Shown here in pieces: positions 32,134 to 61,126 of a stretch of DNA of 64,000 nt. The notes under the pieces were generated by a model that saw only the letters and a program-made list of their open reading frames with translations, did not search any database and was not told the DNA's origin. The stretch is taken from positions 124,001-188,000 of IMG/VR virus record IMGVR_UViG_3300029258_002750; one strand, written 5' to 3'. Numbering within the stretch: the first letter of the stretch is position 1; every line of letters begins with the position of its first letter. The translations under genes and the position numbers were made by a program.

Positions 32134-32507
32134 CCGAGGTCATCTGCCCCTACTGCGGCCAGCCCGCCCAGCTGACCGACTCGGCCGAGGTCTACGGCGG
32201 CCGGTCCTACGGCAACATCTGGCTCTGCCGACCGTGCGGTGCGCGCGTGGGTACCCACAAGCGCGACGGCAAGACCCCGCTTGGGACGCTTGCTGACGCC
32301 CCGCTGCGAGCGCTCAGGATGCGCGTGCACGGAGACTTCGATCCGCTCTGGAAGCAGGACCCCGAGCCGAGAGGCGCGCGCCTCCGCTGGTACCGGCGGC
32401 TCGCCGAGGCGATGGGGATCGAGCTGAAGGACTGCCATATGGCCATGTTCGACGAGGAGTCGTGTCGTCGGGCGTTGGAGGCGATCGAGATCATCCGACC
32501 CGGGTAG
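32130..32507 (+). CDS. DUF3268-like zinc-finger protein
   Basis: CPYCG..A.L....VYG......WLC..C.A.VG.H.....PLGTLA...LR..R...H..FDPLW. Confidence 0.8.
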   Translation: MTEVICPYCGQPAQLTDSAEVYGGRSYGNIWLCRPCGARVGTHKRDGKTPLGTLADAPLRALRMRVHGDFDPLWKQDPEPRGARLRWYRRLAEAMGIELKDCHMAMFDEESCRRALEAIEIIRPG

Positions 32508-32510
32508 AAC
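32502..32510 (+). promoter_or_regulatory. GGGTAGAAC putative promoter, leaderless
   Basis: 6 nt before ATG 32517; TAG is upstream stop. Confidence 0.75.
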
Positions 32511-32516
32511 GTCAGT

Positions 32517-32756
32517 ATGGTGCGAGCCGGGCTAAGAGAGGGCGAGAGGGTCTGGGTGCGGGCGATCGGGGGGTCGCTCGAGCGCGCGCCCCGCCGGGCC
32601 ACGGTCACCTGCACCGGGTCTTCGGCTCTGCCGACCCCGGCTCGCTACTACGACGTCGAGTTCGACGCGGGCGATGAGCGGCGGCTCTGGCTCGGCGACC
32701 ACAACTACGACGTGTGGAAGCGATCCGCGATCGATCGGCTAGGAGAGCTGGCATGA
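32517..32756 (+). CDS. SH3/KOW-like protein with C-tag
   Basis: LREGERVWVR; SAIDRLGEL. Confidence 0.8.
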   Translation: MVRAGLREGERVWVRAIGGSLERAPRRATVTCTGSSALPTPARYYDVEFDAGDERRLWLGDHNYDVWKRSAIDRLGELA

Positions 32757-33331
32757 CTCCCGACCAGAAGGTGAAGGCGGCCGAGGCCGCGCTCAAGAAG
32801 GCGCAGGACGAGGCGAAGCAGGCGAAGCTCGAACAACTCGCGCTCGCGGCCGACAAGAAGCTCGCCGAGGCGGCCCGCGCCGTCTGGGACATCGCCGATG
32901 CGGCCGATCATCCTGAGTGGCTCCACGACATGGAGAAGCAGGTCCACCTGGTGCGCGACAGGATCGCCCTCTCGCTCCTCGGGGCCGGGCCGCGCGTCGA
33001 GGGCCTGGAGAAGCTCGACCCGCATCGGTGGGGGCCGGGCGAGTTCGCAACCAACGAGCCGCACACCTACACGACCGACGAGGATGTGCACCACGCCATC
33101 GCGACCTGGATCTTCGATACGCTCGGTGTGCGCGGCTACGAGCGAGGCCGTCAGGAGAAGTGGGAAGAGCAGTGGTCCAAGGAGGAGATGGACGGGCACG
33201 AGGAGGCGCTGGCCCGGATCCGCGAGCTGATCTTCAACGCCTTCAAGGCGGCCTACGGCAACGAGTCGCGCGCCCGCGAGTTCGCCAACGAGAGCACCCG
33301 GGCCTGGCGCGAGGGCAGACACGACACGTGA
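32753..33331 (+). CDS. hypothetical protein
   Basis: ATG 32753 coupled. Confidence 0.75.
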   Translation: MTPDQKVKAAEAALKKAQDEAKQAKLEQLALAADKKLAEAARAVWDIADAADHPEWLHDMEKQVHLVRDRIALSLLGAGPRVEGLEKLDPHRWGPGEFATNEPHTYTTDEDVHHAIATWIFDTLGVRGYERGRQEKWEEQWSKEEMDGHEEALARIRELIFNAFKAAYGNESRAREFANESTRAWREGRHDT

Positions 33332-33621
33332 CTACCGTCTTCGTCGTCCTGCGCGACTACATGGGCGATCATCACGCCCACCCCGAGTTCGAGTCGGTCT
33401 GGTGGAACAGGGAAGAGGCCCGGGAGGAGTGTTTGCGGCTCGCGGAGGAGGAGATGACAAGGAGCACCGGCTACATCCTCCGCCTTCGGGTCACCGACAG
33501 CGTAGTACGTATTGAGCACAAGCTCACTGGTGGCACCTGGGCGGATCGGACGCTCTTCTTCACGAAGCCCGTCGGGATTCGCGGGTCAGCTGTCATGGCG
33601 CTAGCGAGTCTGGTGCGATGA
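33328..33621 (+). CDS. hypothetical protein with C-tag
   Basis: SAVMALASL. Confidence 0.7.
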   Translation: MTTVFVVLRDYMGDHHAHPEFESVWWNREEAREECLRLAEEEMTRSTGYILRLRVTDSVVRIEHKLTGGTWADRTLFFTKPVGIRGSAVMALASLVR

Positions 33622-33851
33622 GAGCGCGGCCGACGGACGACTTCTGGTACCGCTTCGACCCCGGCGACCGGGTGGAGGGCATTCCCGGCTCGGCGACGCT
33701 TCGCGGCCGACGCGGCACCTTTCTCGGCTACCACGACCGCAACGACACGCTGGTCGTCGTCCAGTTCGACGACGAGGTCGACCCGGAATCCGAGCCGATC
33801 TCGCTGCTCCAGAAGCTCGGGGCGGTGGAGAGTCTGGGAGAACTGGCGTGA
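33618..33851 (+). CDS. SH3/KOW-like protein with C-tag
   Basis: FDPGDRVEG; GAVESLGEL. Confidence 0.8.
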   Translation: MRARPTDDFWYRFDPGDRVEGIPGSATLRGRRGTFLGYHDRNDTLVVVQFDDEVDPESEPISLLQKLGAVESLGELA

Positions 33852-36605: not shown

Positions 36606-37108
36606 GCAACCCCTTCATCGTCCCTGTTCCGCGCGGCGCGACCCAGATCGACCTGCGGCCCTACCTGGCGCCGATCCTGCGGGAGCTACTGCTGATCGCG
36701 CAGCGCGGTCAACCGTGGGGCGAGGCGCATACCGAGATCGAGCTGGAGGACTGGATTGGTCGCGTCTACGGGCGCGACCGACTCGCTCGCGCGATCGAGC
36801 TGGTGCAGCGGGAGTGGTTCTCGGAGTACATGCTCTCGAGGAAGTGGCGCCGGAGCGGCGGCCTCGACGGCGGATTCGCCCAGTACTATCCTCCCGAGCC
36901 GGAGATGAAGCGGCGGGGGCACTTGTGCATCCGGCTGAAGGAGGAGTTCATTCCCGAGAGCCTGCCTCTGATCAGCCAGCACTGGAGGGCGATCCACGAG
37001 ATCGCAAACTGGGAGAAGCGCGCGCCAGCCGAGGTTGCTCGCGACATCCTGGCGATTGGTGGACTGGCTGTGGATGCGCTTGCGCTCCTCGGCGCGGAGA
37101 CCGAGTGA
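36602..37108 (+). CDS. hypothetical protein with C-tag
   Basis: LAVDALALL. Confidence 0.75.
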   Translation: MSNPFIVPVPRGATQIDLRPYLAPILRELLLIAQRGQPWGEAHTEIELEDWIGRVYGRDRLARAIELVQREWFSEYMLSRKWRRSGGLDGGFAQYYPPEPEMKRRGHLCIRLKEEFIPESLPLISQHWRAIHEIANWEKRAPAEVARDILAIGGLAVDALALLGAETE

Positions 37109-37458
37109 GCCTGCTGATCTACCCGGTTGAGGTTTACATCGATCATCGGCTGCGCGAGCGGTTCCCGGATGCCGTAGTCGCGGTTCGCCGCCACTGTGGG
37201 ATGCCGCACTGGTACATCGGCGGCGAGCCAAAGCGCGGCGGGTGGATCCGCTGCCCCGGAGCCGACGGCTGGATGCAGGCACCGTTCCGGCTTTGGCTCA
37301 CCAGAGGATCTGGCAGCCGATCGATTGGTTACACGAGTAGGGGCGAGCTGAATCCGACCTTCGTGCGAGTCGACGACGACAAGCGGTCGTGGGAGTCAGC
37401 GGTGGGGCGGGTGATGCGCGCCGCCGACGATGCGCTTGTTGGGTGGTCTCTTGTATGA
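37105..37458 (+). CDS. hypothetical protein
   Basis: GTG 37105 coupled. Confidence 0.7.
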   Translation: MSLLIYPVEVYIDHRLRERFPDAVVAVRRHCGMPHWYIGGEPKRGGWIRCPGADGWMQAPFRLWLTRGSGSRSIGYTSRGELNPTFVRVDDDKRSWESAVGRVMRAADDALVGWSLV

Positions 37459-37790
37459 GCCTGTCCATCGGCGTCTACACGAGCAACAACGGCAATCGGC
37501 GGATTCATCTCGGCGACACCGACCAGTGGAGCGAAGGTCTCCGGCCGAGTCTGTGCGGTCTTCACTTTCTTGTGTGGTCGCCGGTTCGGGTGATCGAGGA
37601 CGACAACACGGTCCAGTCACCGGCGACGCGCGGCAAGCGCTCAAGAGACGCGGATGTCGAAGAGGTGCTGCGCTACTACCAGGAGTACAAGAAGGCCCCG
37701 CACTGCCAACGATGCCTGAGACTAGCGCAGAGATTCCGTGACGCTGTTTCTCAGCTCGGCGCCATCGCCCCTCGATCTGGTGGGGCGTAG
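37455..37790 (+). CDS. Zn-binding protein with C-tag
   Basis: H....SLCG...CQRC; DAVSQLGAI. Confidence 0.75.
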   Translation: MSLSIGVYTSNNGNRRIHLGDTDQWSEGLRPSLCGLHFLVWSPVRVIEDDNTVQSPATRGKRSRDADVEEVLRYYQEYKKAPHCQRCLRLAQRFRDAVSQLGAIAPRSGGA

Positions 37791-38092
37791 GGGCAAGCCT
37801 CAACGGCGTCGGCGATCTCGTCGCGCGGATTAGTCACCCGCGCGAGTCGGTCCACGGCCGACAACTCGTAGACGGTTACTTTGCCGCGCGGGCGTTCTGG
37901 ATTGCCCGGCCGCCAGTACCACTTCACGCGGACGCCGTGACTCTCGGCCAGGTTCGGGAACCTCTCCTTGAACGTCTCCCGCAGGGCGTGCAGGACGATC
38001 GGCCGGTAAGGCTCGCGGCGGAGGTAGTTCTCGAGCAGCGTGGTCAGTCTCTCCTCGGCCATCTCGGGCGTGTGGTAGTCGGGGTCGATCAT
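37751..38092 (-). CDS. hypothetical protein with C-tag
   Basis: SAVDRLARV. Confidence 0.7.
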   Translation of the reverse strand: MIDPDYHTPEMAEERLTTLLENYLRREPYRPIVLHALRETFKERFPNLAESHGVRVKWYWRPGNPERPRGKVTVYELSAVDRLARVTNPRDEIADAVEACPYAPPDRGAMAPS

Positions 38093-38340
38093 GCGAGCTT
38101 GCCCAGCTGATCGACGATGTTGCGCAGCTCGACCTGGCAGGGCCAGACGAGTTTGCCCTCGAATGGGGAGCTTTCGGGCACGAAGATCCACGGCTGGTGG
38201 CACCGCTGGCACCCGCACAGGAACCGGCCGCGCACGATCGACTCCACGACAGCTTGGTCGGCCGACATGACAGCGCCCTCCTGGCCGGTCTTGATGAGTG
38301 TCACCAGTGCGCATTCCCACAGCTCGCCTTCACTCGCCAT
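38089..38340 (-). CDS. Zn-binding protein with C-tag
   Basis: CGCQRC; NIVDQLGKL. Confidence 0.7.
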   Translation of the reverse strand: MASEGELWECALVTLIKTGQEGAVMSADQAVVESIVRGRFLCGCQRCHQPWIFVPESSPFEGKLVWPCQVELRNIVDQLGKLA

Positions 38341-38842
38341 CGGCCAGCGCTCCGAGCAGATCCACGGCCGGGATCAGGGTGTAGATCGATTCGAGAAGGA
38401 ACTGGAGGACCCGCTTCGCGTCCTCGCCGTCCAGGTCGGCCGGATCGTCTGGGGCCTTCCCTTCTCGGTTGACCGAGCACAGCATCAAGACGGTGGCGTG
38501 GATGTTGATCTTCGCGGCCAGCATTCCACTGGGCTGCTCGTCGTAACGCTGCTTGATCAGTTCGGATAAGGTCACGCCGGTCGCGAGCGCGTCAAATCCG
38601 GCGTCGGGAACCTCGGTGCTGAGGTCAAACTCGGCCACGTCGGTGTAGAGCGGCCGGGCGATGGAGTGCCATTCCATGGCGAGCTGGAACGGCTCCCGGC
38701 CTACGTGCCGATTCCAGTCTCCCGCGTTGGACAGGATCTCGGCGAACTTCCTGAGCATGTGACTGGCGAGAGCGTGGGCCGAGATCGTTTTGCCGTCTTG
38801 CTGCTCCAACAGCTTGAAGATGTCCTCGATCGAGACGGTCAC
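38330..38842 (-). CDS. helical protein with C-tag
   Basis: PAVDLLGAL. Confidence 0.8.
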   Translation of the reverse strand: MTVSIEDIFKLLEQQDGKTISAHALASHMLRKFAEILSNAGDWNRHVGREPFQLAMEWHSIARPLYTDVAEFDLSTEVPDAGFDALATGVTLSELIKQRYDEQPSGMLAAKINIHATVLMLCSVNREGKAPDDPADLDGEDAKRVLQFLLESIYTLIPAVDLLGALADGE

Positions 38843-39177
38843 GGCCTGTCCTCGGCCACCTCGGCCAGCGCAACCACAGCTCCGCGCGCGCGTAGGATCG
38901 CGGCCCGCATTTCGCTCTGGAAGATCTCCCGGGCGATGCGCTGTCCCTCTCTCTGGGCCTTCTTGGCGATGTCATCCTCAGCCTTCAGCAGCTCCATCCT
39001 GCACTCCTTGGAGCAGAAGATGAGCGTCGGGTCCATGCCTTCGGTGAGGAAGCGCACAGGGCGCATACTCGGACGATCGACCCAGTTCTCAGGGAGCTTG
39101 ATCTGGGTATTCGGCCTGTGCTTCCGCTCGTTGCGCTTCCCGCACCAGCAGCAGACCGTGGTCACCTTCATCGTCAT
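38839..39177 (-). CDS. Zn-finger protein (CxxC...FCSxxC)
   Basis: CCWCG...FCSKEC; leaderless start. Confidence 0.75.
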   Translation of the reverse strand: MTMKVTTVCCWCGKRNERKHRPNTQIKLPENWVDRPSMRPVRFLTEGMDPTLIFCSKECRMELLKAEDDIAKKAQREGQRIAREIFQSEMRAAILRARGAVVALAEVAEDRP

Positions 39178-40029: not shown

Positions 40030-40902
40030 ATGGGAATCTTCGGTGCACAACTGGACGATGACGCCATCCCGCAGGCGAAGCTCTCCCCGGATGTCCAGGC
40101 GAAGCTCCCCACCTGGGAGACCAAGACCGAGAACTTCGCGATCACAACCGCCGACAACGGCAAGGGCTACATCAACACGGGTGCGACCGGGCCGGTCAAG
40201 GGCACGTGCGCTGTGGGCCTGCCAGACGGCTTCGAGGTCTCCTTCCTCCGGGTCACGGCTCAGGACTTCTGGTTCCAGCCAGCGCCGGGCGAGGAGTGCT
40301 ACCGCACCGACCTCGGTACCTTGACCGGCTGGGGCACCAACCTTGCGGTCTCGATCAACGCCCTGGTCAATCGCATCACCTGGAAGCTCGTGGTCGACGG
40401 CGCCAATCGGATGTGGGTTCCGCTCGTCGGCACCGTGAACCTGAAGGCGCAGTACCCGCTCCAGGGTCTCGACCTCAAGGACAAGACCCCAGACGGAGCG
40501 GCCTTCAACGTCAATCCGCCGACATGCGCGGCCGGGCGCTGGGAGATCCGCATCCGGGCCGAGCCATCGGCCACGCTCCTGGGATCGCTCGAGTGGGACG
40601 GCGGGTTCACCTGGACAGATGGCGCCGTCGCTGGCGTGTCTGACCTGCTCTATCTGGAGATCGACGCTTCCCTGACGCACGCGGGCGACGATGTGGTCTG
40701 GTCCGACGATCCGGCCGACGACCAGTTCCTCACCCTTTCCTACAGCACCGGCGGCGGCTTCCTCACGCTCTCCACGATCAAGCCCTACGAGGGGCCGCTG
40801 ACCATCGGCCGGGGACAGCTGCTCGACTACTGGATCGGCCAGGACGGACGGCTCTACGCGCGCAACGGCGGTGCGACCCCGTTCCCCTACGAGGCGGTCT
40901 AG
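40030..40902 (+). CDS. putative tail fibre / structural protein
   Basis: AIPQAKLS repeat-like motif; Thr/Gly/Trp beta-rich. Confidence 0.55.
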   Translation: MGIFGAQLDDDAIPQAKLSPDVQAKLPTWETKTENFAITTADNGKGYINTGATGPVKGTCAVGLPDGFEVSFLRVTAQDFWFQPAPGEECYRTDLGTLTGWGTNLAVSINALVNRITWKLVVDGANRMWVPLVGTVNLKAQYPLQGLDLKDKTPDGAAFNVNPPTCAAGRWEIRIRAEPSATLLGSLEWDGGFTWTDGAVAGVSDLLYLEIDASLTHAGDDVVWSDDPADDQFLTLSYSTGGGFLTLSTIKPYEGPLTIGRGQLLDYWIGQDGRLYARNGGATPFPYEAV

Positions 40903-41135
40903 CTCTCCGGCAAGCTACCCAGCTGACTGACCGCGTCCTTCGGTTTGACCGGCTCCCAGTCGGCGAACAGCTCTGCGTTGGCCCAGCGCTCGTCCTGCGT
41001 CTCCGGCCCAATCCCGTGGTACATCACGTAGACGCCTAGTTCGGTCCAGGTAACCGAGTACGGTTCCTCGCTGTTCGCCGGTTTGCGGCGGGCTGCGGGT
41101 ACCTCGCTGCGTCGTAGCGCCGTGTAGAGCTGCAT
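40899..41135 (-). CDS. DUF2829-like-outline protein with C-tag
   Basis: MQLYTALRRSEVPAARR...AELFADWEP; DAVSQLGSL. Confidence 0.75.
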   Translation of the reverse strand: MQLYTALRRSEVPAARRKPANSEEPYSVTWTELGVYVMYHGIGPETQDERWANAELFADWEPVKPKDAVSQLGSLPES

Positions 41136-41141
41136 GTCGGT

Positions 41142-41150
41142 GTTCTACCC
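41142..41150 (-). promoter_or_regulatory. GGGTAGAAC putative promoter, leaderless
   Basis: 6 nt before ATG 41135. Confidence 0.75.
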
Positions 41151-41662
41151 TACGCGGCCGAGAGGGAGAACACCTCCGCGTTCGCGTCGAGCAGGGCGCC
41201 GAGTGAGGTAACGACGTCATCGTTCGGTGCGCCCTCCGGCCACCACCGGACCACGATCGGCTCGAGGTTCCGCTCCAGCAGGGCGCGCACGTCATCCCAG
41301 TGGCACGGGTGGCGGTGCTCGTGGAACAACTCGGTCGCCCACAGCGCGGCGAGCAGGATCCTCTCCAGCTTGTCGCGGCCCGATGGTGTGATCTGCTCAC
41401 GGAGCTGCGGACCCTCGTCCTCGTAGAAGGCGAAACAGCTCGGCCGGAACTGCGGGAAGACCTGGCAGATGAGGTAGTCGATGTAGGACTGGTAGTGGTC
41501 GGGATCGTCGCCCCCGGCCACGGTTTCCACTGCCGCCTTCAGCTTGCTCCGGTCGTGGAGCGTCTTCTCGATGAGCGGAAAGATGGTCGTAGTGGTGCCG
41601 CCGTCAATCTCCAGCCCGAGCACGAGTTGGAGCTGAACGGTCTGGGTGAGTTGCAAAAGCAT
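41150..41662 (-). CDS. hypothetical protein with C-tag
   Basis: GGAGG RBS; DVVTSLGAL. Confidence 0.75.
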   Translation of the reverse strand: MLLQLTQTVQLQLVLGLEIDGGTTTTIFPLIEKTLHDRSKLKAAVETVAGGDDPDHYQSYIDYLICQVFPQFRPSCFAFYEDEGPQLREQITPSGRDKLERILLAALWATELFHEHRHPCHWDDVRALLERNLEPIVVRWWPEGAPNDDVVTSLGALLDANAEVFSLSAA

Positions 41663-41741
41663 GGCTGCCTTCCTCCGGGTTGGTTGAGCAGCAGTTCCTT
41701 TCGCATGAGGCGTGCCGAGGAAACCCCGACCAACCTCTACT

Positions 41742-41772
41742 CCTCCCAACAGCTCACCGGCCCGTTCTCACG
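41742..41772 (-). promoter_or_regulatory. degenerate bipartite motif CGTGAGAAC-N11-CTGTTGGGAGG
   Basis: same N11 spacing as the other copies. Confidence 0.5.
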
Positions 41773-42125
41773 GCTGGAGTTCCGGCAGAAGATTCTTTGT
41801 GCGTTCGGAAGATCCCTTGTGCCTCGATCCGGCCTGGAGCGGATTCCGATCCGGCCAGGGCCGGATTGGGGTGAGCGGCGGGATCGTCGGCTATCCCCTG
41901 GGATAGCTCCGGGGCGCCCCGGGGCTCGCCAGAGAGCCCGACATAAACGCTTGGGGGACGAGGTTGCCCCCGACTATCGATGTAAGTCCTTTAGAATCAA
42001 CGCAGCGCTTCCAGAGCCCGCGTGTGGTTCGATCATCAGGCCGAGGGCTCGTGGCCCCTGTGCGCCGAGATCGTGTCTCCTGATCAAGGACGTGGCGCCA
42101 GGGAGCCTGCCAGGACGTCTGCCCG

Positions 42126-42134
42126 GGGTAGAAC
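42126..42134 (+). promoter_or_regulatory. GGGTAGAAC putative promoter, leaderless
   Basis: 6 nt before ATG 42141. Confidence 0.75.
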
Positions 42135-42140
42135 GTCAGC

Positions 42141-42560
42141 ATGGCGCGTAAGAAGACTCCGGGCATCCCGCTCGCGATGACCACGAATATGTGGATCGGC
42201 TTGCGACTGATCGGCTCCCACTACCTGTGGGAGCGCGCCTGGCCCGACCCGGATCACGAGCCGAAGGAGTACGAGAAGGTCTGCGCTGTGGAGAAGCTCT
42301 ACGAGGAGCTGCCCGGCGACTGGCCAGCGACCGAGGGGCCGAATCGACGCCGCGCCTATGGCGGTCGGCGGGGGCGCGCTCTGAAGAGGCGCCAGAAGAT
42401 GCACCTTCGGCCCGAGCAGGTCGAGCCGATGCTGGACCTGCTGCGCTATGCGGTGTCGGTGCCCGGCGGCTTCATGGACAACCTGGTCTCGGGCTACCAC
42501 ATGCGGATCGCGCAGTTGGAGAAGCTCGACCTGATCACGATCATGGGCTCGCTCGCGTGA
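42141..42560 (+). CDS. hypothetical protein, paralog of 43510-43860, degenerate C-tag
   Basis: RKK.PGIP...LR..G.H.L.E; DLITIMGSL. Confidence 0.8.
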   Translation: MARKKTPGIPLAMTTNMWIGLRLIGSHYLWERAWPDPDHEPKEYEKVCAVEKLYEELPGDWPATEGPNRRRAYGGRRGRALKRRQKMHLRPEQVEPMLDLLRYAVSVPGGFMDNLVSGYHMRIAQLEKLDLITIMGSLA

Positions 42561-42811
42561 AGCGTCGGCTTCCAGTCGGAACCCCGGTAGTGATCACCGG
42601 CGGCGGCCACGAAGGGGCACTCGGCTACATCACCTGGGACGAGGCTCTCAGCGCGCTGCCGGGCTTCGTTACGGTCCAGCCGGACGACTACAGGGGATTT
42701 GCCGTTCGAGTGCGGATCGAGGACGTGGAGCCCCGCAGCGCGGTCGATGCCCTGGCATCGGTCGTGAGGGAGGAAGAACGTGGAGCGGACGCTGGTACTG
42801 ATCAAGCCTGA
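42557..42811 (+). CDS. SH3/KOW-like protein with C-tag
   Basis: LPVGTPVVITGGGHEGALG; SAVDALASV. Confidence 0.8.
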   Translation: MKRRLPVGTPVVITGGGHEGALGYITWDEALSALPGFVTVQPDDYRGFAVRVRIEDVEPRSAVDALASVVREEERGADAGTDQA

Positions 42812-43229
42812 CGCGGTCTCGCGCGGGCTCGTCGGAGAGATCATCTCCCGCTTCGAGCGGAAGAAGCTGAAGCTCCTCGGTCTGAAGATGCTGCGCGCCG
42901 ACGGGGAGCTTGTCGCACAGCACTATGCCGAGCACGTTGACAAGCCGTTCTACGCGGAGCTGGCCCTCTTCACGATGAGCGGGCCGATCGTGGCGATGGT
43001 TCTGGCGGGTCACCAGGCCGTTCACGTCGTGCGCACCTTGATGGGACCGACCGATGGGGTAGGCGCGCCGCTCGGAACGATCCGGGGTGACTTCGCGTCC
43101 GGCGATCCGATCCGCGAGAACCTCGTCCACGGCTCCGACTCAGCTGAGTCGGCTGCGCGGGAACTCGAGTTGTTCTTCGGCGGCGACTTCGATGTGGACG
43201 ACCATCGGGTCAGCGCTGACGGGCCGTGA
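42780..43229 (+). CDS. ndk: nucleoside-diphosphate kinase
   Basis: ERTLVLIKPDAV.RGLVGEIISRFE, GTIRGDF, NLVHGSDS. Confidence 0.95.
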   Translation: MERTLVLIKPDAVSRGLVGEIISRFERKKLKLLGLKMLRADGELVAQHYAEHVDKPFYAELALFTMSGPIVAMVLAGHQAVHVVRTLMGPTDGVGAPLGTIRGDFASGDPIRENLVHGSDSAESAARELELFFGGDFDVDDHRVSADGP

Positions 43230-43513
43230 CCGAGAACGAGTTCATACGAGAGATCACGGCTCTCGGGTTCTACCCGCTCACCGGCCACGGCACGCGGCCA
43301 GCGAGCGACCTCGTCCACGATCGCCTGAGCATGATGGTCGATCTTCGCGGGCTGAGGCGGCGAGCAACCTACCGCCGTGGCAATCCCTACCTCAGCGCTC
43401 TTGCGGCAATAGCGCGTGAGATCAGCAAGCTCGATGCGATTGATCAGCTCGCCCTGCTGGGAGATACGCTGCCGACCGAGGTAGAACAGGGGTTAGAGGA
43501 ACATGATCTATGA
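43226..43513 (+). CDS. hypothetical protein with C-tag
   Basis: DAIDQLALL. Confidence 0.7.
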   Translation: MTENEFIREITALGFYPLTGHGTRPASDLVHDRLSMMVDLRGLRRRATYRRGNPYLSALAAIAREISKLDAIDQLALLGDTLPTEVEQGLEEHDL

Positions 43514-43860
43514 GCAGGAAGAAGCCCGGAATCCCGATGAGAATCACGGGGCCGGTCCTGTTGGCCTTGCGAATGGCTGGGGCGCATCATCTTTACGAGA
43601 ACGAGAACGATGACGAGGTCCGGTGGTGGCTGGACCGGCTGCCTCGACCGGACTGGGAAGAGGCGGCTCGTAGCTACACAGGTGTTGGCTCGAAGACTAT
43701 TCGGATTCCGGCCGCCAAGGTGGACTCGTTCATCCGCTTCTTGAAGATTGCTGCCACGAATCCGCACCAGGGGCCTGGGGTCGGTGGTGCGATCGAGAGC
43801 CGGATCGAGAAGCTCGAGTCGATGAGCAGCATCGAGCGGCTCGGTGCGATCGAGCCGTGA
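43510..43860 (+). CDS. hypothetical protein, paralog of 42141-42560, with C-tag
   Basis: SSIERLGAI. Confidence 0.8.
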   Translation: MSRKKPGIPMRITGPVLLALRMAGAHHLYENENDDEVRWWLDRLPRPDWEEAARSYTGVGSKTIRIPAAKVDSFIRFLKIAATNPHQGPGVGGAIESRIEKLESMSSIERLGAIEP

Positions 43861-46536: not shown

Positions 46537-49500
46537 ATGAACCTGACCGAGCTTAGGGACTCCTGCATCCAGTGCGTGTGCAAGCATCTTGCCCAGGCCG
46601 AGGTGCTGATGGGCGAATCGGTCCAGGGTTACCCCGAGCACAGGTGGCTGGCGATTGGTCATATGGGCGAGGCGGCTGACGAGTGCTGCAAGGACTTCCC
46701 GAAGCTCGCGGCCGAGATCCGCAAGCACCGGACGCGTTACATGGCCGATCCCTCCTACTCCGTTCCGGTCATGGAGCTGATCGAGAAGGCGAATCGCATG
46801 GCGACCAAGACCGAGAACATCCAACCGGCGCGTACCCTCGATGAGGCCCTGGCCTTTCTGGATGAGGGGCGGCGGCGGAAGCACCGGGAGACGGAGCTAC
46901 TCACGCCCGCGCAACTGCACGCTCTGGTGAATCACGAGGCCGACCAGGACTACCTCAAGTGGGCGCACGGCTTCGCCAGCCGCTACAACGAGCGCGCCGG
47001 TCTCGATCTGCACGGGCCGGGCGGCGACGCCAAGGGCGCCGCCGAGGTTGCCGAGCAGGCCGAGGCGCTCGACGACGAGCGAGTCGACGGCCGGTTGGAC
47101 GAGGGCTCGTGGAAGGACAAGTTCTCCGAGCAGTGGCCCGGTGGTCCAGTCTCGCAGGACGAGAAGCTGTTCAAGGACCACGGCCACAAGCTCGGCGACT
47201 GGCTCCGCAAGTTCATGGACGACAACATCCCGAAGAAGGCCAAGGGGTGGCTCGCCAGCAAGAGTCAGGCGAAGTGGTACAAGAAGGGCCTGGAGGAGCT
47301 TGAGAAGGCGGCGAAGGCCGGTGGCGAGCCCCCGCCACCTCCGAAGAAGAAGAAGAAGTTCAAGCCCAGCCACTACCAGCAGGCGATCTTCGACTGGGTC
47401 GCCGATGCGTCGAAGAAGGACAAGGCCGCGCTCGTCGTGGACGCGAAGGCGGGCGCGGGAAAAAGCACCACCATGGAGCAGGCGCTCGAGTTCGTGCCGC
47501 CCGGCCAGAAGGTCGTGTTCCTGGCCTTCAACACCGACATTGCCAACGCGCTGGCCGAGCGCGTCAAGGACATGAAGAACGTCGAGGCCGCGACGATCAA
47601 CGCCTACGGGCGCGCGTCGGTGGTCAAGGCGTTCAAGAAGGGCGGCAAGCCGCCTGAGCTGGTGAAGAACAAGAACCGGCTCATCTGCGACGAGCTGGTG
47701 AAGAAGCTCGCCCCCGACAAGAAGACAGCCGAGAAGTACGAGTCGACCTACGGCTACGACATGGGCGAGGCCATCACCAAGCGCAAGATGATGGGCACGC
47801 TCGACGAGAAGGGCGAGATGCAGTTCCCGCCCTGGAAGGAGGTCTTGGCCAGGTTCGAGATCGACCTTCCGACGTCTGGGACCCAAGGCGAGTACCTCAC
47901 GCCGCAGCAGGTCACGGACACGCTGGAGGAGGCGTTCCAGCGGAGTGTCGATGACAAGGTGACGATGGAGTACGCCGACCAGGTGCTCTGGCCGGTGATG
48001 CACAACCTGCCGATCATCAGCCGGGCGACTGGGAAGAAGGCCAACCTCGACTGGGCGATGGTTGACGAGGTCCAAGACCTCTGCCCGCTCGAGCGCGAGT
48101 TCGCCAAGCGACTCGCCCCGCGCCACATGCTGGTGGGCGACCCGAACCAGTCGATCTACGCCTTCAAGGGCTCAGATCCCGACTCGATGTCGAAGATGCA
48201 GGAGCAGCTCGGCGCGGAGGAGAAGCCGCTCTCGATCTGCTATCGCTGCCCGAAGAAGGTCATCACCGAGGCGCAGACGCTCGTTCCCACGATCGAGGCG
48301 GCCCCGAACGCACCTGACGGCGACGTCCAGACCATCAAGCACGCGCAGTTCTACGAGACCCTCAAGCCGGGGGACTTCGTGCTCTGCCGCACCAACGCGC
48401 CGAACGTGGCCGCCGCGCTGGGGCTGATCGCTCAGGGCAAGAAGGCGAACGTCGTCGGCCGTGACATCGGGAAGTCCCTGAGCAGGCTGATCGAGAGGAT
48501 CGGCGGCAAGAAGGGCCACAAGGACATGCCCATCGACGAGTTCGCTGGGAAGGTGCAGAGCTGGCACGCGAAGGAGACCAAGCGGCTGACGGCCGAGAAG
48601 AAGGAGCACTTGCTCCAGGGTCTCGACGACAAGCGCGACTGCCTCCAGGCTCTCATGTCGAAGGGCGACGTGAAGGTCGCCGGTGACCTGATCAAGGTGG
48701 TCAACCAGCTGTTCGTGCAGGACCCGACACCGGCCATCAACTTCTCCTCGGTGCACAAGGCGAAGGGTCTGGAGGCGGACAACGTCTACATCCAGCGGCC
48801 CGACCTCCTGCCGCTACCGAAGGCGCTGAAGTCCGAGGATCCGGTCCAGATCCAGCAGGAAGACAACCTCAAGTACGTGGCGATCACGCGCGCGAAGAAG
48901 GCGCTGACGTGGGTCCTGCCGCCGCCGAAGGAGGGCGAGGACGAGGGGCCGACCGCTCCGCTGCCGTCACCGCCTCCGCCTCCCAAGCCCTCGCCCGCGC
49001 CTCCCCCGCCACCCGCGCCGGAGGCGAAGAAGCCCAAGGCGAAGAAGAAGGTCACCAAGAAGAAGAAGGTCACCAAGAAGAAGGTCAAGAAGAAGAAGGT
49101 CACCAAGAAGAAGGTCAAGAAGAAGGGTGTCACGAAGGCCGACATCGCCAAGCTGATGTCGATGATCCCGGACGACGCCACAATGGCCGACTGGGGCGAG
49201 TCAATTGACCCGAACGGCGCGACGCTGTTCGAGCGTGTTGTCGGGGTCCTCGATGAGGGTGCCGACTTCACCAAGGGCCGACGGAAGGTCTCCAAGAAGA
49301 AGCTGGTCGCGAAGAAGAAGGCTGCGGCCAGCGTCAAGATGCCCAAGAACGCGGCCCAGGCGGCCGAGCAGATCAAGGCCGCGCTGGCGAAGGGCGATCA
49401 GGCGACGGCGAACCGCGTCTGGGAGCTGTACGTGCACGGCGGCGGGCTGGGCGAGCCGGGGATGTGGGGCTACCAGTCGCGCAAGGCCGACATTCGCCAG

Positions 49501-51789
49501 ACCAAGCTCGCCAAGCTCGGCGTCTCGTGGAAGGGGTCTGGGCCGGTCGTCGAGGGGAAGGAGACGACTGCGGATCTGGTGCTGGCCGAGGTGAACGCGC
49601 TGACCGGAGGGAACACCATCAGCGCGACCGCGCTGGCCAGGAAGATCGGTCGAGCGCGAGGAACCGTCGTCAAGGCGGCCAGTAGGCTGGCCATGCGCGG
49701 CAAGATCGAGCGGTTGTCTGGTCTGGACGTCTACGCGCCTCTTCGAGAGGGGCGCGAGGTCAACAAGGACGGCACGATGTCCTGCGGCGTCTTCCTGCCG
49801 GTGCCGTCGAACCTGGCTCGCTACTTCCCGGACAAGAGCGAGGAGGACGACTCGGTCCCGCACTTCACGGTGCTCTACGCCGGTGATCTCTCGCCAGCTG
49901 ACTACGGGAAGCTGGTCGATGTGGTCGGCAAGGTCGCTCGGAAGCACGAGCCCTTCCTGATGCGGATGGGCGGCTACGGCGAGTTCACGAACAACAACGG
50001 CCAGACGATCCCGCACATGATCGGCAACGCCTGGCCCGAGAAGGCGAGCCTCAACGATCTGCACGCGGCTATCCGCAAGGCGGCCGAGCAGGCCGGTGTT
50101 CCGATCGCGCACACGTATGGACCAAACGAAGACAAGAAGAAGGGCTACGCCGAACAGTTCAAGGCGCACGCGACGCTGGCCTACATCAACCCGGGCGAAC
50201 CGGCCTACAAGGGCCACAGGCCCGAAGGGAGCTGGAAGGTGACCGACCTGGAGCTGTGGGGCCACGAGAAGTATCGGGTGCCGCTCGGTGCGACCGTGAC
50301 CGAGGACTACAAGGCGACCAAGAAGAAGGCGAAGAAGAAGGCGAAGAAGCCCAAGGGGTCCAAGGCATTCCTCAAGGACGTGGAGGAAGCCGCCAGCAAG
50401 CTCGCTGGCAAGCCGCTCAAGGTCGACAAGCACTCGACGACGCTTGGGAAGGGATTCGACTACTCGTTCAAGAGCGGTGGCCGGTTCAAGATCCGGCTTC
50501 GCCCGGATGGCTCGTTCACGGTCAAGCTCCAGGGACAACCGAAGCCGCACTATCGCTACCGGGGCGACGGCGCGACCCTCGCTGGCGCGCTGGCTTCGAT
50601 GAAGTCGGAGAAGACCAAGGGTAAGAAGCCTCCCGAGCACCACGTGCAGATCGCGAAGGCCGGGAAGAAGCCCAAGATGAAGCCGTGGGCAGTCGGCGAG
50701 CCTGGCCCCAAGCAGGCGAAGGTGAATGGCATCATGCTGTTCAACGACCTGGGCGTGGACCAGGAGACCTGGGACCGCTACGCGACGGCCTGCAAGGACT
50801 CGATGGACCTGCTCAAGAAGCGCGGCTTCGGCTTCATGCTGCCGAACGTGACGATGCACCTCCGCACCGGCACGGCGCTGGGAAACTACGACATGAAGAC
50901 GAAGATCGTCGAGATCTTCGTGAACACGATCGGCGCGAAGCAGACTCCGGCCAAGATCATGACCACGATGGTCCACGAGATGGGACACCACTACTACTAT
51001 CGGGAGATCCCTCGCGCGCGCAGGAAGACCTACGCCTGGTACTTCGGGCTCGCGAAGAAGCCAACCGAGAAGGGGAAGAAGCACGGCGACTTCCCCAGCT
51101 CCTACGGGGCGACGAAGCGCTACGAGGACTTCGCCGAGATCTTCGCGGCCTACATCGGCAAGGGGCACAAGATCCAGAGTCGCTACAAGCTCACGAAGGA
51201 CATCATGGACCGCTTCCGTACGTTCATGGCGCCCGACAAGCGCGTGGACCTGCGCGAGGACGAGGAGCTGTTCGGCGATGGCCTCTCGTCGGTGCTCGAG
51301 CGGCGCGAGGTGGTGACCCTGGGCGTCTGCTGCGCGCTCTGCGAGGCCGAGGGCAGCAAGACCGGAGGGGGCAGCAAATGGGTGCATCCGCTGGCGCTGC
51401 TCGCCAGGAGGCGCGCCAGGATCGATGCCAGGGACGGTCACGACGACGCGGCCGAGTATTGGCGCGGGTGGGCTGTCGGTTCGTTCCTGACGGCCAAGAA
51501 GGGCAAGGGCGACGACCCGGGCAGCAAGAGCACTCATCGTCTCGCGCTCCGCGCGCGCGACTGGGCCGAGAAGGATGACGAGGAGGGGCACAGCGACGCG
51601 GCCGAGTACTGGCGCGGGTGGGCAGCCGGGGCGTTCCTGACGGCCGAGGCTGTGGACTTCCCTCACCGCTACAGCTCGCCTGCCCAGGGCTCCTCGCGCA
51701 CGGGCGTGGGGACTGCTCCCGTCGAAGACCCGGGGGAAGCGCTGCCGCCGCCCGCGAAGCGGCGGAAGCTGAAGACGCCGCGCCCGTAA
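46537..51789 (+). CDS. 1750-aa polyvalent protein: UvrD/SF1 helicase + 2H phosphoesterase + zincin metallopeptidase-like
   Basis: AKAGAGKST, DEVQD, VGDPNQSIYAF, YRCP, SVHKAKGLE, YVAITRAK; PHFT (49858) and HATL (50167); HEMGH (50974) ...EDFAE. Confidence 0.9.
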   Translation: MNLTELRDSCIQCVCKHLAQAEVLMGESVQGYPEHRWLAIGHMGEAADECCKDFPKLAAEIRKHRTRYMADPSYSVPVMELIEKANRMATKTENIQPARTLDEALAFLDEGRRRKHRETELLTPAQLHALVNHEADQDYLKWAHGFASRYNERAGLDLHGPGGDAKGAAEVAEQAEALDDERVDGRLDEGSWKDKFSEQWPGGPVSQDEKLFKDHGHKLGDWLRKFMDDNIPKKAKGWLASKSQAKWYKKGLEELEKAAKAGGEPPPPPKKKKKFKPSHYQQAIFDWVADASKKDKAALVVDAKAGAGKSTTMEQALEFVPPGQKVVFLAFNTDIANALAERVKDMKNVEAATINAYGRASVVKAFKKGGKPPELVKNKNRLICDELVKKLAPDKKTAEKYESTYGYDMGEAITKRKMMGTLDEKGEMQFPPWKEVLARFEIDLPTSGTQGEYLTPQQVTDTLEEAFQRSVDDKVTMEYADQVLWPVMHNLPIISRATGKKANLDWAMVDEVQDLCPLEREFAKRLAPRHMLVGDPNQSIYAFKGSDPDSMSKMQEQLGAEEKPLSICYRCPKKVITEAQTLVPTIEAAPNAPDGDVQTIKHAQFYETLKPGDFVLCRTNAPNVAAALGLIAQGKKANVVGRDIGKSLSRLIERIGGKKGHKDMPIDEFAGKVQSWHAKETKRLTAEKKEHLLQGLDDKRDCLQALMSKGDVKVAGDLIKVVNQLFVQDPTPAINFSSVHKAKGLEADNVYIQRPDLLPLPKALKSEDPVQIQQEDNLKYVAITRAKKALTWVLPPPKEGEDEGPTAPLPSPPPPPKPSPAPPPPPAPEAKKPKAKKKVTKKKKVTKKKVKKKKVTKKKVKKKGVTKADIAKLMSMIPDDATMADWGESIDPNGATLFERVVGVLDEGADFTKGRRKVSKKKLVAKKKAAASVKMPKNAAQAAEQIKAALAKGDQATANRVWELYVHGGGLGEPGMWGYQSRKADIRQTKLAKLGVSWKGSGPVVEGKETTADLVLAEVNALTGGNTISATALARKIGRARGTVVKAASRLAMRGKIERLSGLDVYAPLREGREVNKDGTMSCGVFLPVPSNLARYFPDKSEEDDSVPHFTVLYAGDLSPADYGKLVDVVGKVARKHEPFLMRMGGYGEFTNNNGQTIPHMIGNAWPEKASLNDLHAAIRKAAEQAGVPIAHTYGPNEDKKKGYAEQFKAHATLAYINPGEPAYKGHRPEGSWKVTDLELWGHEKYRVPLGATVTEDYKATKKKAKKKAKKPKGSKAFLKDVEEAASKLAGKPLKVDKHSTTLGKGFDYSFKSGGRFKIRLRPDGSFTVKLQGQPKPHYRYRGDGATLAGALASMKSEKTKGKKPPEHHVQIAKAGKKPKMKPWAVGEPGPKQAKVNGIMLFNDLGVDQETWDRYATACKDSMDLLKKRGFGFMLPNVTMHLRTGTALGNYDMKTKIVEIFVNTIGAKQTPAKIMTTMVHEMGHHYYYREIPRARRKTYAWYFGLAKKPTEKGKKHGDFPSSYGATKRYEDFAEIFAAYIGKGHKIQSRYKLTKDIMDRFRTFMAPDKRVDLREDEELFGDGLSSVLERREVVTLGVCCALCEAEGSKTGGGSKWVHPLALLARRRARIDARDGHDDAAEYWRGWAVGSFLTAKKGKGDDPGSKSTHRLALRARDWAEKDDEEGHSDAAEYWRGWAAGAFLTAEAVDFPHRYSSPAQGSSRTGVGTAPVEDPGEALPPPAKRRKLKTPRP
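49041..49130 (+). repeat. AAGAAG(AAG)GTC(ACC) microrepeats encoding a KKKVT linker
   Basis: read directly. Confidence 0.8.
51445..51645 (+). repeat. 150-nt-period repeat encoding DAAEYWRGWAxGxFLTA twice
   Basis: copies 51445-51495 and 51595-51645. Confidence 0.85.
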
Positions 51790-55775: not shown

Positions 55776-57239
55776 ATGACCACGCTGACCGCACTGCTGC
55801 TCGAGGCCCGTCGAGGCAGGATGGGCCGCTCCGGCCGCCGCCGTCCGCTCAAGACGGCTCCGCGTCACAAGACATCGGCCAGGCGCGAGAAGAAGTCCGC
55901 CAAGCCCATCAAGATCACCAAGGAGATGCTCAAGAAGGGCGTCAAGCCCGAGGGCGTCACCTGGAAGGACTGGATGCAGGCAGGCGGCAAGTTCGGTGGC
56001 GGTACAGGCAAGCCCAGGCCGAAGAAGCTCCGCGTCCCGAGCCATGTGGAGGTTGAGATCGGCCGCTGGGCGCTCGATCGGGTCTACATCAGCGACTCGA
56101 ATCTCGAGCACCACCTCCAGCGATCTGGCCGCAAGGGAGATCTCCCGCACACGGCCGCATGGGTCGGTACGGACAAGGAGCGGATGAAGCTCCTGCTCAA
56201 GTTAGGCGTTCGTCACTACCGCAAGAAGGGCCGGAAGTCGAAGGAGAAGGAGAAGGCGAAGTCGGTCTCGAAGTCGATGGGGAAGGCGCTCTCGGCCGAC
56301 CCGTTCGCGGGAGCCAGCTGGGGAGACGAGGACAAACTCCAGCAGACCGGCTGGTGGGGCGTGGGCGGCGGCAAGAAGGCATCGAAGCGGCTCCCGAAGC
56401 CGAAGCCGAAGCTCACGCCCGAGCAGCAGAAGCTCCGAGATCTGGTGAGCGGCTTCAAGAAGAAGATGTCGCACATCCCGCGTACGGCGGCCGGTGGCAT
56501 CGTCTTCAAGACGTTCGAGGGTCCCGATCTCTGGGATCTGCCGGTGCTGGCCTGCCAGGTCGCGCCCAAGTACGGCACCTACTGGGTGTTCCCGAAGGGT
56601 GGTCTCGACATTGGCGAGAGCCTGCACAAGGGGGCGGCTCGCGAGGTCAAGGAGGAGAGCGGTGTTCGTGCGAAGGTCGCGAACAACCAGGCGCACGTTA
56701 CCAAGAGCAAGTTCGGTGACCGTGGCAAGTACGACCTTCCGCTCATCCTGAAGCTGATGAAGGAGCAGTACCCCAAGGAGGCCAAGTTCATCGAGTCCCA
56801 GGCTGAGGAGATCAAGGGGATGTTCTTCTCCTGGGAGAATGAGACCCACTACTACGTGATGAAGCACACCGGCGGCTCGCCGGGGTCTGGCACCGATCAC
56901 GAGATGGCCCGCTCCGAGTGGGTATCGCTGCGCGACGCGTTCAAGCGCAGCTATCGGATGGAGGAGGTCGTCACGAAGCTCTTCCCGGTGATCAGGCGGA
57001 TGTGGAAGCCGACCGGCGAGGCGAAGAAGCCGCTGCCGATCTCGGCGCTGCGGACGCCCAAGCCGAAGACGATGCCGGTCGGCAAGCCATCGGGCAAACC
57101 GATCGGCCCGAGCCGGATCGTGATTACACCGGCCACGAAGCAGTCGCAGAAGCACACGCCGCTGAAGCAGTGGCCGCCGCCGAAGAAGCAGACCAGCTAC
57201 AAGAGCTACCCGATCTGGAAGCTCTACGGCGGCAGCTAG
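55776..57239 (+). CDS. Lys-rich protein with Nudix hydrolase domain
   Basis: WVFPKG + Nudix box GGLDIGESLHKGAAREVKEESGV. Confidence 0.9.
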   Translation: MTTLTALLLEARRGRMGRSGRRRPLKTAPRHKTSARREKKSAKPIKITKEMLKKGVKPEGVTWKDWMQAGGKFGGGTGKPRPKKLRVPSHVEVEIGRWALDRVYISDSNLEHHLQRSGRKGDLPHTAAWVGTDKERMKLLLKLGVRHYRKKGRKSKEKEKAKSVSKSMGKALSADPFAGASWGDEDKLQQTGWWGVGGGKKASKRLPKPKPKLTPEQQKLRDLVSGFKKKMSHIPRTAAGGIVFKTFEGPDLWDLPVLACQVAPKYGTYWVFPKGGLDIGESLHKGAAREVKEESGVRAKVANNQAHVTKSKFGDRGKYDLPLILKLMKEQYPKEAKFIESQAEEIKGMFFSWENETHYYVMKHTGGSPGSGTDHEMARSEWVSLRDAFKRSYRMEEVVTKLFPVIRRMWKPTGEAKKPLPISALRTPKPKTMPVGKPSGKPIGPSRIVITPATKQSQKHTPLKQWPPPKKQTSYKSYPIWKLYGGS

Positions 57240-60565: not shown

Positions 60566-61126
60566 ATGGACTTGTGCTCGCCAGGAATGCCCTCTAGCCG
60601 TAGGATGTCTGGGTCCTACGAGGCCATGGGGGTTACGACAATGCTGGACTTACGTCTGTCCGACTCACGGCTGTGGCACTATCGGGCGGTGGTCACCCGA
60701 GTGATCGACGGTGACACCGTCGAAGCGCACATCGACTGCGGGTTCGGTAACTACCGGGTCGAGCGGCTCCGGCTCGCGAGGGTGGACGCGCCCGAGATGA
60801 GGCCGCGTCGGGGCACGCCCGAGCAGAAGGAGGCCGAGCGAGCTGTCGCGGCAGAGTCCAAGGACCGTGTGATCGAGTTGGTCCAGGGCCGCGAGTGCAT
60901 GATCCGCACCTACAAGACCGGCAACTTCGGCAGGTGGATCGCCGACGTCCACCTCCCTGACGATGCGGTCTCCGCGCTAGGCCGTGTCGCATCGGACGAG
61001 CCGTTGAAGACCGTCAACGAGGTGCTCATCGAGGAGAAGCTGGCGATCCAGTACGGAGGGAAGAAGCCGGACAACTGGGAGGAGTACCGCAACCAGCCCC
61101 GGCCCGAGGAGGCCGGAGAGGCGTAG
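60566..61126 (+). CDS. thermonuclease (SNase-fold) with inserted C-tag
   Basis: RVIDGDT, RLARVDAPE, NFGRWIADV, VNEVLIEEKLA; start may be later (60605-60641). Confidence 0.85.
   Translation: MDLCSPGMPSSRRMSGSYEAMGVTTMLDLRLSDSRLWHYRAVVTRVIDGDTVEAHIDCGFGNYRVERLRLARVDAPEMRPRRGTPEQKEAERAVAAESKDRVIELVQGRECMIRTYKTGNFGRWIADVHLPDDAVSALGRVASDEPLKTVNEVLIEEKLAIQYGGKKPDNWEEYRNQPRPEEAGEA

Follow-up and report, generated by a model that had tools for sequence, protein, structure and literature searches.

A polyvalent protein of new architecture in a jumbo phage genome, with a leader motif reminiscent of the T4 capsid-targeting sequence

Phages and plasmids are believed to bring polyvalent proteins into the cell as their earliest weapons, and the delivery and separation of the domains of these proteins are largely unexplained. 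In the survey by Iyer et al. (2017), a lethal-factor-like zincin metallopeptidase is the hub of these proteins, and 2H, metallopeptidase and, rarely, UvrD-type helicase domains are listed in them (PMC5512222). A second relevant system is the capsid-targeting sequence (CTS) of phage T4, an N-terminal propeptide of 10-19 residues in which positions 4 and 7 serve targeting and positions 8 and 10 direct cleavage by gp21. The CTS is the sole feature common to otherwise diverse injected internal anti-defence proteins (PMC9026906; PMC3012670), and its sequence is MKTYQEFIAE (PMC8442874). Here we describe a gene for a giant protein at positions 46537-51789 (+) of a 64,000-nucleotide stretch of DNA (the window) from IMG/VR virus record IMGVR_UViG_3300029258_002750. 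The record (G000) is 275,101 bp long, and the window is G000:C1:124001-188000. IMG/VR classes the record as a virus with direct terminal repeats, its ends overlap by 144 bp, and CheckV gives a completeness of 100%. By the definition of Iyer et al., the giant protein is polyvalent, and its architecture is new. The class is already known; new are the architecture, an N-terminal (Nt) domain, a C-terminal tail and, above all, a CTS-like leader that occurs both at gene starts and at internal module borders.

The gene is a single ATG-started open reading frame (ORF) of 1750 residues without an internal stop, with a Shine-Dalgarno site (GGAGG) 5 nt upstream of the ATG. The GC content at its third codon positions is 0.905 in a genome of 65% GC, marking it as strongly coding. 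An 821-aa antisense ORF (window 49201-51666, (-)) was dismissed, since stop-free shadow frames are usual in high-GC genes. An earlier reading of the window from its letters alone (the sequence-only reading) had described one 1750-aa ORF with complete UvrD-like motifs, a Pro-rich plus KKKVT linker and an HEMGH...EDFAE zincin, all of which were borne out. Each of the three enzymatic domains that it named, the helicase, the 2H phosphoesterase and the zincin, passed profile and/or fold tests.

The helicase contains the complete superfamily 1 (SF1) motifs Q, I, Ia, II, III, IV, V and VI, including GAGKST (306-311), DEVQD (510-514), GDPNQSIY (534-541), CYRC (568-571), VHKAKGLE (739-746) and VAITRAK (781-787). 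Pfam UvrD-helicase (PF00580; aa 292-557, E 2e-15) and UvrD_C (PF13361; aa 732-791, E 2e-12) both match over the gathering score, and AAA_19 (PF13245) is also over its cut-off. The whole ORF had no megablast match among 50,697 phage records. In a tblastn search of phage records the match was confined to the helicase part, with standalone phage helicases about 30% identical over aa 278-800, and the helicase is the sole part of the protein with a match in PHROGs (PHROG 1967, 'DNA helicase', E 1e-77). Orthology to cellular UvrD, Rep or PcrA was rejected, as the NCBIfam matches are partial and reach 30-47 bits against cut-offs of 911-1168. The extension ahead of the helicase (aa 96-275), for which AlphaFold 2 (AF2) predicts helices with partly low confidence, co-occurs solely with the helicase, namely in the related proteins P0001, P0002, P0003 and P0022.

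The 2H domain matches Pfam 2_5_RNA_ligase2 (PF13563) over aa 1105-1245 (E 9e-8, over the cut-off). Its predicted catalytic motifs, H1109-x-T1111 and H1211-x-T1213, are kept in 52-61 aligned relatives, and H1176, H1192, Y1194, E1239 and W1241 are invariant as well. These extra residues define a 2H clade that is specific to phages and has more than 140 members; an exhaustive HMMER search queried with aa 871-1750 found 430 proteins, >140 of them via the 2H domain. The AF2 model of aa 1066-1620 has a mean predicted local distance difference test score (pLDDT) of 84, and its 2H part is above 90. The best fold matches are to D. radiodurans cyclic phosphodiesterase (CPDase; 5h7f, Z 16.2), YjcG (2d4g, 14.6) and LigT (4qak, 13.7), with a P. 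horikoshii 2'-5' ligase also among the best and Usb1 and viral 2'-5' phosphodiesterases next. Thus, the sequence-only reading was right about a 2H domain with both H-x-T motifs and wrong in calling it Acb1-like: 7t27 scores only Z 8.2, and the Acb1 of PaBG ranks 43 in BFVD. Searches of the 2H, zincin, N-terminal and insert segments against PDB sequences gave chance-level matches only and no Acb1 sequence match. The model also matched an actinophage 'capsid morphogenesis protein' in BFVD. This is the single 2H domain in the whole genome.

The zincin has the motif H1480-E-M-G-H1484 and a third-ligand region E1530-D-F-A-E1534. H1480, E1481, H1484, E1530, D1531, F1532 and E1534 are invariant in 16-17 homologues. 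Its AF2 model matches anthrax lethal factor (1yqy) with Z 12.3 over 177 residues, followed by the Pro-Pro endopeptidases PPEP-3 (Z 9.7) and PPEP-2 (Z 9.4). At the profile level, the PDB zinc metallohydrolases 9urd and 4l7a match weakly, and Pfam Peptidase_Mx1 (PF15890) stays below its cut-off (E 0.012, 15.4 bits vs 25.6). A conserved 'beta subdomain + HExxH' module, aa 1263-1612, recurs as a unit in 17 proteins, including standalone versions such as P0008 (372 aa) and P0028.

We assign the giant protein to the polyvalent class because its modules are shuffled in relatives, the 2H domain is fused to portals and prohead proteases, and distant zincin relatives lie in proteins with an LPD domain. 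P0001 (1670 aa) is an 86%-identical, syntenic orthologue with the same module order, assembled from two other samples. Two clean swaps, both exactly between borders, set it apart from the protein of the window: the winged helix-turn-helix (wHTH) insert is gone, and DUF5661 stands in place of the AEYWRGW repeats. In P0002, the order is 2H, Nt, DUF5661 and helicase; P0003 has an added NUDIX domain; P0004 combines 2H, Nt and NUDIX without a helicase; and P0005 has a different zincin with a 2H domain. Pfam domains were tallied in 66 relatives. The 2H domain is present in 54 of the 66, DUF5661 in 12, the XkdF-type prohead protease, NUDIX and UvrD in 6 each, and Portal_Mu in 4. Single relatives each carry Mu_F, Zeta-toxin kinase, Fic, GNAT, topoisomerase I, pyrophosphatase or one of the wHTH families HTH_24, MarR_2, HTH_11 and HTH_Crp_2. 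Four Mu-type portals (P0059, P0060, P0063 and P0077) end in a C-terminal 2H domain 46-49% identical to that of the giant protein. In prophage-like records of about 40 kb, distant zincin relatives belong to an ORF that is at least 2030 aa long and also encodes LPD22 and GNAT. The sequence-only reading had placed the protein in the polyvalent class, and shuffling, zincin type, portal-2H fusions and the domain list of Iyer et al. support this. It had also called the combination unfamiliar; apart from P0001, the module order was not matched in the other proteins searched.

We found a short leader, 9-12 residues with the consensus M-S-L-[FY]-[DE]-R-[VIL]..E, in otherwise different proteins of this phage. 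For the core L[FY][ED]R, the phage proteome contains 13 instances against 3.2 expected. About eight phage genes begin with (M/V)-S-L-[FY]-[ED]-R-[VL] and typically reach a Glu at residue 9-12, as in VSLYERVLGE, VSLFDRVLGE, VSLYDRVLAE and VSLYERVVLLTE. The codons of these leaders differ synonymously, and most of the genes have a Shine-Dalgarno site. The leader-bearing proteins are mostly without an assigned function, one being a polynucleotide-kinase-like P-loop protein, and a Pnkp-phosphatase-like HAD protein (HAD_SAK_1) has the leader internally, at aa 174, C-terminal to its HAD match. In the giant protein, a canonical copy lies internally at a module border (aa 895-907). The motif A-T-L-Y-E-R-V also occurs close to the C-terminus of the protein encoded after the sliding-clamp gene dnaN (G000 33064-33684).

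The same arrangement recurs in the relatives. Standalone zincin or 2H relatives start with the leader (P0008, MSLFDRVLTE; P0017, MSLFDRIVEE; P0024; P0160), and multi-module relatives have it between modules, with three in tandem in P0157. This tag-rich, Nt-containing protein is encoded two genes past a T4 gp13-like neck gene on a 359-kb contig. In total, 165 relatives contain 50 such leader tags, 11 of the 50 directly after Met1. The tag is followed by [LIVM]-x-E in 31 of the 50, against 6.1 +/- 2.3 at random positions. The leader resembles the T4 CTS.

A second short signal may be present at the C-terminus. At least 15 otherwise unlike relatives (P0001-P0004, P0007, P0014, P0017, P0021, P0024, P0029-31, P0036, P0040 and P0160) share a tail with the consensus E-x-x-D-F-P-x-[KR]-Y-x-S-P...S-x-R-T-G-[VIL]-G-T-A-P, a spacer and a basic end; in this genome, it is found in the giant protein only. 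A Glu always stands 3 residues ahead of D-F-P, a placement that would fit a Glu-specific cut. The tail core, G-[VIL]-G-[ST], recalls encapsulin cargo-loading peptides, and the tail may be a signal of that kind. In our searches, no Pfam or PDB family matched the tail or the Nt domain.

The Nt domain is modelled by AF2 with a pLDDT of about 97 over aa 10-90 (helices 11-29, 35-50, 55-70 and 78-92). Its conserved motifs are R-x-S-C-x-x-C-x-x-K-H-L, Q-G-Y-P, G-H-[LM]-G-E-A-x-D-E and E-I-R-x-H-R. The domain recurs in 20 relatives, where its place in the protein varies and its partners are frequently 2H, DUF5661 or HAD_SAK_1. Its fold has no match in the PDB and only uncharacterised clusters in AFDB; the PDB sequence search stayed at chance level, and a language-model atlas gave no usable lead. 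Within the lineage-specific insert, aa ~1008-1060 are a weak candidate for a MarR-type winged helix. The atlas leads are all wHTH proteins, in keeping with the HTH-like segment of the sequence-only reading; the profile matches fell short of it, with Pfam MarR (PF01047) at E 0.07 and 13.5 bits (gathering cut-off 24.6) and PcaV in the PDB at chance level (E ~1; 1.2).

The domain composition of the giant protein and its place in the polyvalent class are secure. Our preferred explanation, in which we have about even confidence, is that this multi-effector of a jumbo phage with a T4-type head, made of autonomous modules joined by flexible Pro/Lys linkers and leader copies, is packed, cut and injected. 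The sequence-only reading had suggested injection and processing, and the CTS-like leaders and the gp21-type protease lend this indirect support. Also in favour are the module swaps exactly at borders, the repeated fusion of the 2H family to head-internal proteins and, more weakly, the position of the P0157 gene near a neck gene. We infer packaging, cleavage, ejection and substrates as follows. The precursor would enter the prohead, as the T4 internal proteins and Alt do. The gp21-type (S77) prohead protease of the phage and/or the protein's own zincin would cut after Glu at the leader-like borders, and the fragments would leave together with the DNA upon infection. Inside the cell, the helicase would act on DNA, and the 2H domain might hydrolyse 2',3'-cyclic or 2'-5' phosphodiesters in damaged RNA ends or nucleotide immune signals. 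The zincin might process the precursor or host proteins. The cut is postulated at the downstream [LIVM]-x-E, because many tags have Asp where T4 gp21 needs Glu.

Tentatively, and with a little less than even confidence, we extend this to a clade of T4-headed jumbo phages in which the leader (M-S-[LIV]-[FY]-[DE]-x-[IVL]-x-E) would be a capsid-targeting and Glu-protease cleavage signal for fast-shuffling enzymes. The repertoire would comprise 2H, NUDIX, HAD phosphatase, P-loop kinase, zincin, helicase and the four-helix domain. As the leader is reused inside giant genes, such proteins would be polyproteins in the strict sense, which enter the head, are cut into single enzymes and are injected as a cocktail.

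Several points weigh against packaging and cleavage. The gene sits outside the structural block (the portal begins 12 kb downstream), among small unidirectional genes and genes of nucleotide metabolism (NUDIX, SNase) that look early. The giant protein has no leader at its N-terminus, and internally it has one canonical and two degenerate copies. The Asp of many tags occupies a position at which T4 gp21 requires Glu. A helicase of 190 kDa might just as well serve replication or repair in the cytoplasm. The co-occurrence of tags and the S77 protease, which is present in the tag-sharing relative G001 and in none of four distant tag-less, zincin-bearing jumbo contigs, is itself a weak point in favour and is based on very few genomes. 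Finally, both the phage and the giant protein are known from sequence alone.

The main rival, possible though on balance unlikely, is a cytoplasmic, non-packaged early multi-enzyme for nucleic-acid repair and anti-defence, either tethered or self-processed by its zincin. Its leader would dock to a hub such as the phage DnaN, or would be a recombination joint. The adjoining genes, early-looking or of nucleotide metabolism, agree with this, as do the phage's own beta-clamp and the tags on the polynucleotide-kinase-like P-loop protein and the Pnkp-like HAD phosphatase. The tandem tag triplets of P0157 might suit a multivalent hub, and the leader core S-L-F recalls the bacterial clamp-binding motif, QL[SD]LF, and the tail of the RB69 polymerase. 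However, 11 of the 50 tags of the relatives stand right after Met1, and 0 of 12 real tags here are C-terminal, unlike T4-type clamp peptides. The coupled [LIVM]-x-E serves no clamp-binding role, the tag-bearing proteins are not replisome components, and the 2H family is elsewhere joined to portals and prohead proteases. A complex prediction for a DnaN dimer with a tag peptide gave no answer either way and was not counted as evidence.

Another explanation, which we consider improbable, is RNA end-healing or repair. The 2H domain would open the 2',3'-cyclic phosphates that the host's anticodon or ribotoxic nucleases leave behind and act with the kinase-like and HAD-phosphatase-like proteins of the phage and its 36 tRNAs, the helicase remodelling RNA or DNA. 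The nearest 2H folds are indeed LigT/CPDase enzymes, and the genome encodes the T4-Pnkp-phosphatase-like HAD_SAK_1 and polynucleotide-kinase-like P-loop proteins as well as a large tRNA array and a tmRNA. Moreover, P0159 combines HAD_SAK_1 with the Nt domain in one protein, and at locus L019 HAD_SAK_1 is a neighbour of the relative's gene. On the other hand, RtcB and an Rnl2-type ligase (PF09414) were not found in the complete genome in searches with working controls; the search for T4 Rnl1 (PF09511) was uninformative because its control failed. In Iyer et al., the 2H domains of polyvalent proteins are favoured as RNases or degraders of nucleotide signals because they never occur alongside RNA ligases (PMC5512222). 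RNA repair also leaves the zincin and the leaders unexplained.

The sequence-only reading had itself raised the possibility of an assembly chimera. Of the 31-mers of the ORF, 99% are present in three runs from three separate studies, and the Logan contigs of these runs are interrupted solely inside the two Lys-linker repeats. A 52-kb and a 118-kb contig stop at 49085 and 49096, within the repeat, with 40-50-nt unitigs as the only bridges. The break is explained by the failure of a k=31 graph at a tandem repeat of 15/30 nt, and the depth is equal on both sides in each run (28 vs 24, 26 vs 22 and 29 vs 27). In P0001, P0002 and P0003, which come from other samples and assemblers, the helicase is likewise followed by a Lys linker and then by the KADIAKL..SLFERV segment seen here. 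Thus, although the contigs end in the repeat and no single read was seen across it, a chimeric ORF is very unlikely, and we give almost no weight to an in-frame fusion of two separate genes by assembly over the low-complexity repeat, given the equal depth, the repeat length, the independent relatives and the closure of the 275-kb record with terminal repeats. Skip joints in the read table (49082>50311 etc.) were dismissed, as they reflect 20 nt that match in both Lys-linker repeats, are not divisible by three and fall under the reliability limit of the tool. Lys-linker repeats are also present in short contigs from other organisms of the same samples.

Its gene content marks the phage as a jumbo myovirus whose morphogenesis genes form a T4-type block (Table 1). 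The best identity of its gp23-like capsid protein to an isolate is only about 30%. A class II ribonucleotide reductase is also encoded. PolA and the prohead protease both carry inteins, with matches to Intein_splicing and to Hom_end_hint plus LAGLIDADG. A 2123-aa protein at G000 63202-69573 has no Pfam match. Around the giant gene and its relatives, the neighbours are NUDIX, staphylococcal-nuclease-like (SNase), NDK, MazG, dUTPase and HAD_SAK_1 genes, with NDK and MazG at the orthologous locus. The NUDIX protein starts with MTTLTALLLE here and with MSLADRLNRR in L019, which may thus be a degenerate leader. Relatives show an anti-defence neighbourhood of NUDIX genes and, in one of them, an Acb2/Tad1-like gene; no Acb2/Tad1 counterpart was detected in the genome of the window, in a search without a working control.

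Table 1. Features of the giant gene, of the phage genome and of a related locus (positions in the window unless G000, the source record, or L018, a relative's locus, is named)
Feature	Position	Residues	Remarks
Nt domain	46537..46821 (+)	1-95	Four-helix bundle
Helical N-terminal extension of helicase	46822..47361 (+)	96-275	Starts with degenerate border peptide LDEALAFLDE, ends PPPPPKKKKK
UvrD/Rep-like SF1A helicase core	47362..48918 (+)	276-794	Pfam, PHROG, motifs
Pro-rich, then Lys-rich (KKKVT)n linker	48919..49137 (+)	795-867	Translation; tandem repeat
AAG-rich tandem repeats coding the Lys linkers	49040-49137; 50320-50349		Period 15/30 nt (first repeat)
Border segment with leader-like tag	49138..49257 (+)	895-907 (tag)	G-A-T-L-F-E-R-V-V-G-V-L-D-E
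Lineage-specific insert	49258..49731 (+)	908-1065	Missing from orthologue P0001
2H phosphoesterase, LigT/CPDase type	49732..50322 (+)	1066-1262	PF13563, fold, conservation
Second Lys-rich linker	50323..50358 (+)		KKKAKKKAKK; translation; repeat 50320-50349
Beta subdomain and lethal-factor-like zincin metallopeptidase	50359..51264 (+)	1275-1372 and 1373-1576	
Degenerate tag-like border	51265..51300 (+)	1577-1588	E-L-F-G-D-G-L-S-S-V-L-E; conserved end of zincin module
C-terminal variable region	51301..51645 (+)	1589-1703	Cys cluster and two AAEYWRGWA repeats
Conserved C-terminal tail	51646..51786 (+)	1704-1750	E-A-V-D-F-P-H-R-Y-S-S-P...S-S-R-T-G-V-G-T-A-P...basic KRRKLKTPRP
NUDIX protein (487 aa)	55776-57239	257-390 (NUDIX)	N-terminal part long and rich in Lys; synteny kept in every relative
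SNase gene	60566-61123		Downstream in relatives L001 and L019 too
Leader-started genes	24804-25217; 26585-27196; G000 79474, 92715, 93662, 107837, 108641, 208921		
Leader inside the protein	G000 85169 and 94813		One of the two is the Pnkp-like HAD phosphatase
Portal	G000 187810-189711		Head block
Two acidic scaffold-like proteins			Head block
Peptidase_S77 (gp21-type) prohead protease with intein	G000 191916-194747		PF03420 match
gp23-like major capsid protein	G000 194762-196195		First ten residues end L-A-E
Tail sheath and baseplate proteins			Same T4-type morphogenesis block
PolA (family A DNA polymerase) with intein	G000 40799-43639		
CobT/VWA-like protein	G000 36989-38950		
DnaN-type sliding clamp (beta-clamp)	G000 31955-33067		Phage's own
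36 tRNA genes and tmRNA	G000 6525-28298, all (-)		tmRNA tag ANAPVRLAA
Acb2/Tad1-hairpin gene	L018 16877-17215		Between polyvalent gene (P0005) and NUDIX gene

A leader common to standalone proteins and module borders, in a genome with a T4-type protease, is a testable sequence signature. Should it serve packaging and cleavage, the sequence alone would tell which proteins uncultured jumbo phages inject. UvrD-like helicases, LigT-like 2H phosphodiesterases and NUDIX hydrolases would then count as counter-defence tools that are made beforehand and injected, and the tag would be a portable means of loading foreign proteins into large capsids. Regardless of this, a 2H clade specific to phages is defined here, together with a four-helix domain and a C-terminal motif that are both new.

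Compared with known systems, the giant protein is like the polyvalent proteins of Iyer, Burroughs, Anand, de Souza and Aravind (2017), such as P1 DarB/DdrB and MuF fusions, in its many effector domains, its zincin hub and the variable architectures of its kind. Polyvalent proteins combine at least two unrelated enzymatic domains in one phage or plasmid polypeptide, and here a helicase, a 2H domain and a zincin are combined in a complete phage genome; the hub is of the lethal-factor type and the architectures are combinatorial. In contrast to the archetypes, the element that encodes it is neither Mu/P1-like nor conjugative; it is a jumbo myovirus with a T4-type head, and the gene is not beside MuF or the portal. 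A CTS-like leader stands at the borders; the passages of Iyer et al. consulted mention no such leader and only self-processing by the zincin. The helicase shares all SF1 motifs with UvrD/Rep/PcrA and the PHROG 1967 helicases and differs in its private helical N-extension and its embedding in a polyvalent protein.

The two H-x-T/S motifs and duplicated beta-alpha fold of the 2H superfamily are both found in our domain. It has the fold and both H-x-T motifs of the LigT/CPDases (5h7f; E. coli LigT 4qak/5ldm) at an identity of only 15-20%, and Acb1 is a more distant 2H relative. The zincin shares HExxH, the downstream Glu helix and the fold with anthrax lethal factor and the Pro-Pro endopeptidases (M34-like) at 11-14% identity. 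Unlike lethal factor, it has its own N-terminal beta subdomain and no toxin-type targeting domains; its targets would be bacterial or phage substrates.

The leader shows no sequence homology to the T4 CTS past the pattern, is also internal and tandem, and its role in encapsidation and cleavage is putative. The pattern itself is shared: MKTYQEFIAE and MSLYERVLGE both have an aromatic residue at position 4, hydrophobic residues at 7-8 and a Glu near 10. The genome is also T4-like in encoding a portal, a prohead protease of the gp21 type (S77) and a major capsid protein resembling gp23. As with IPI-III and Alt of T4, a short N-terminal leader is the sole feature common to unrelated proteins of one phage.

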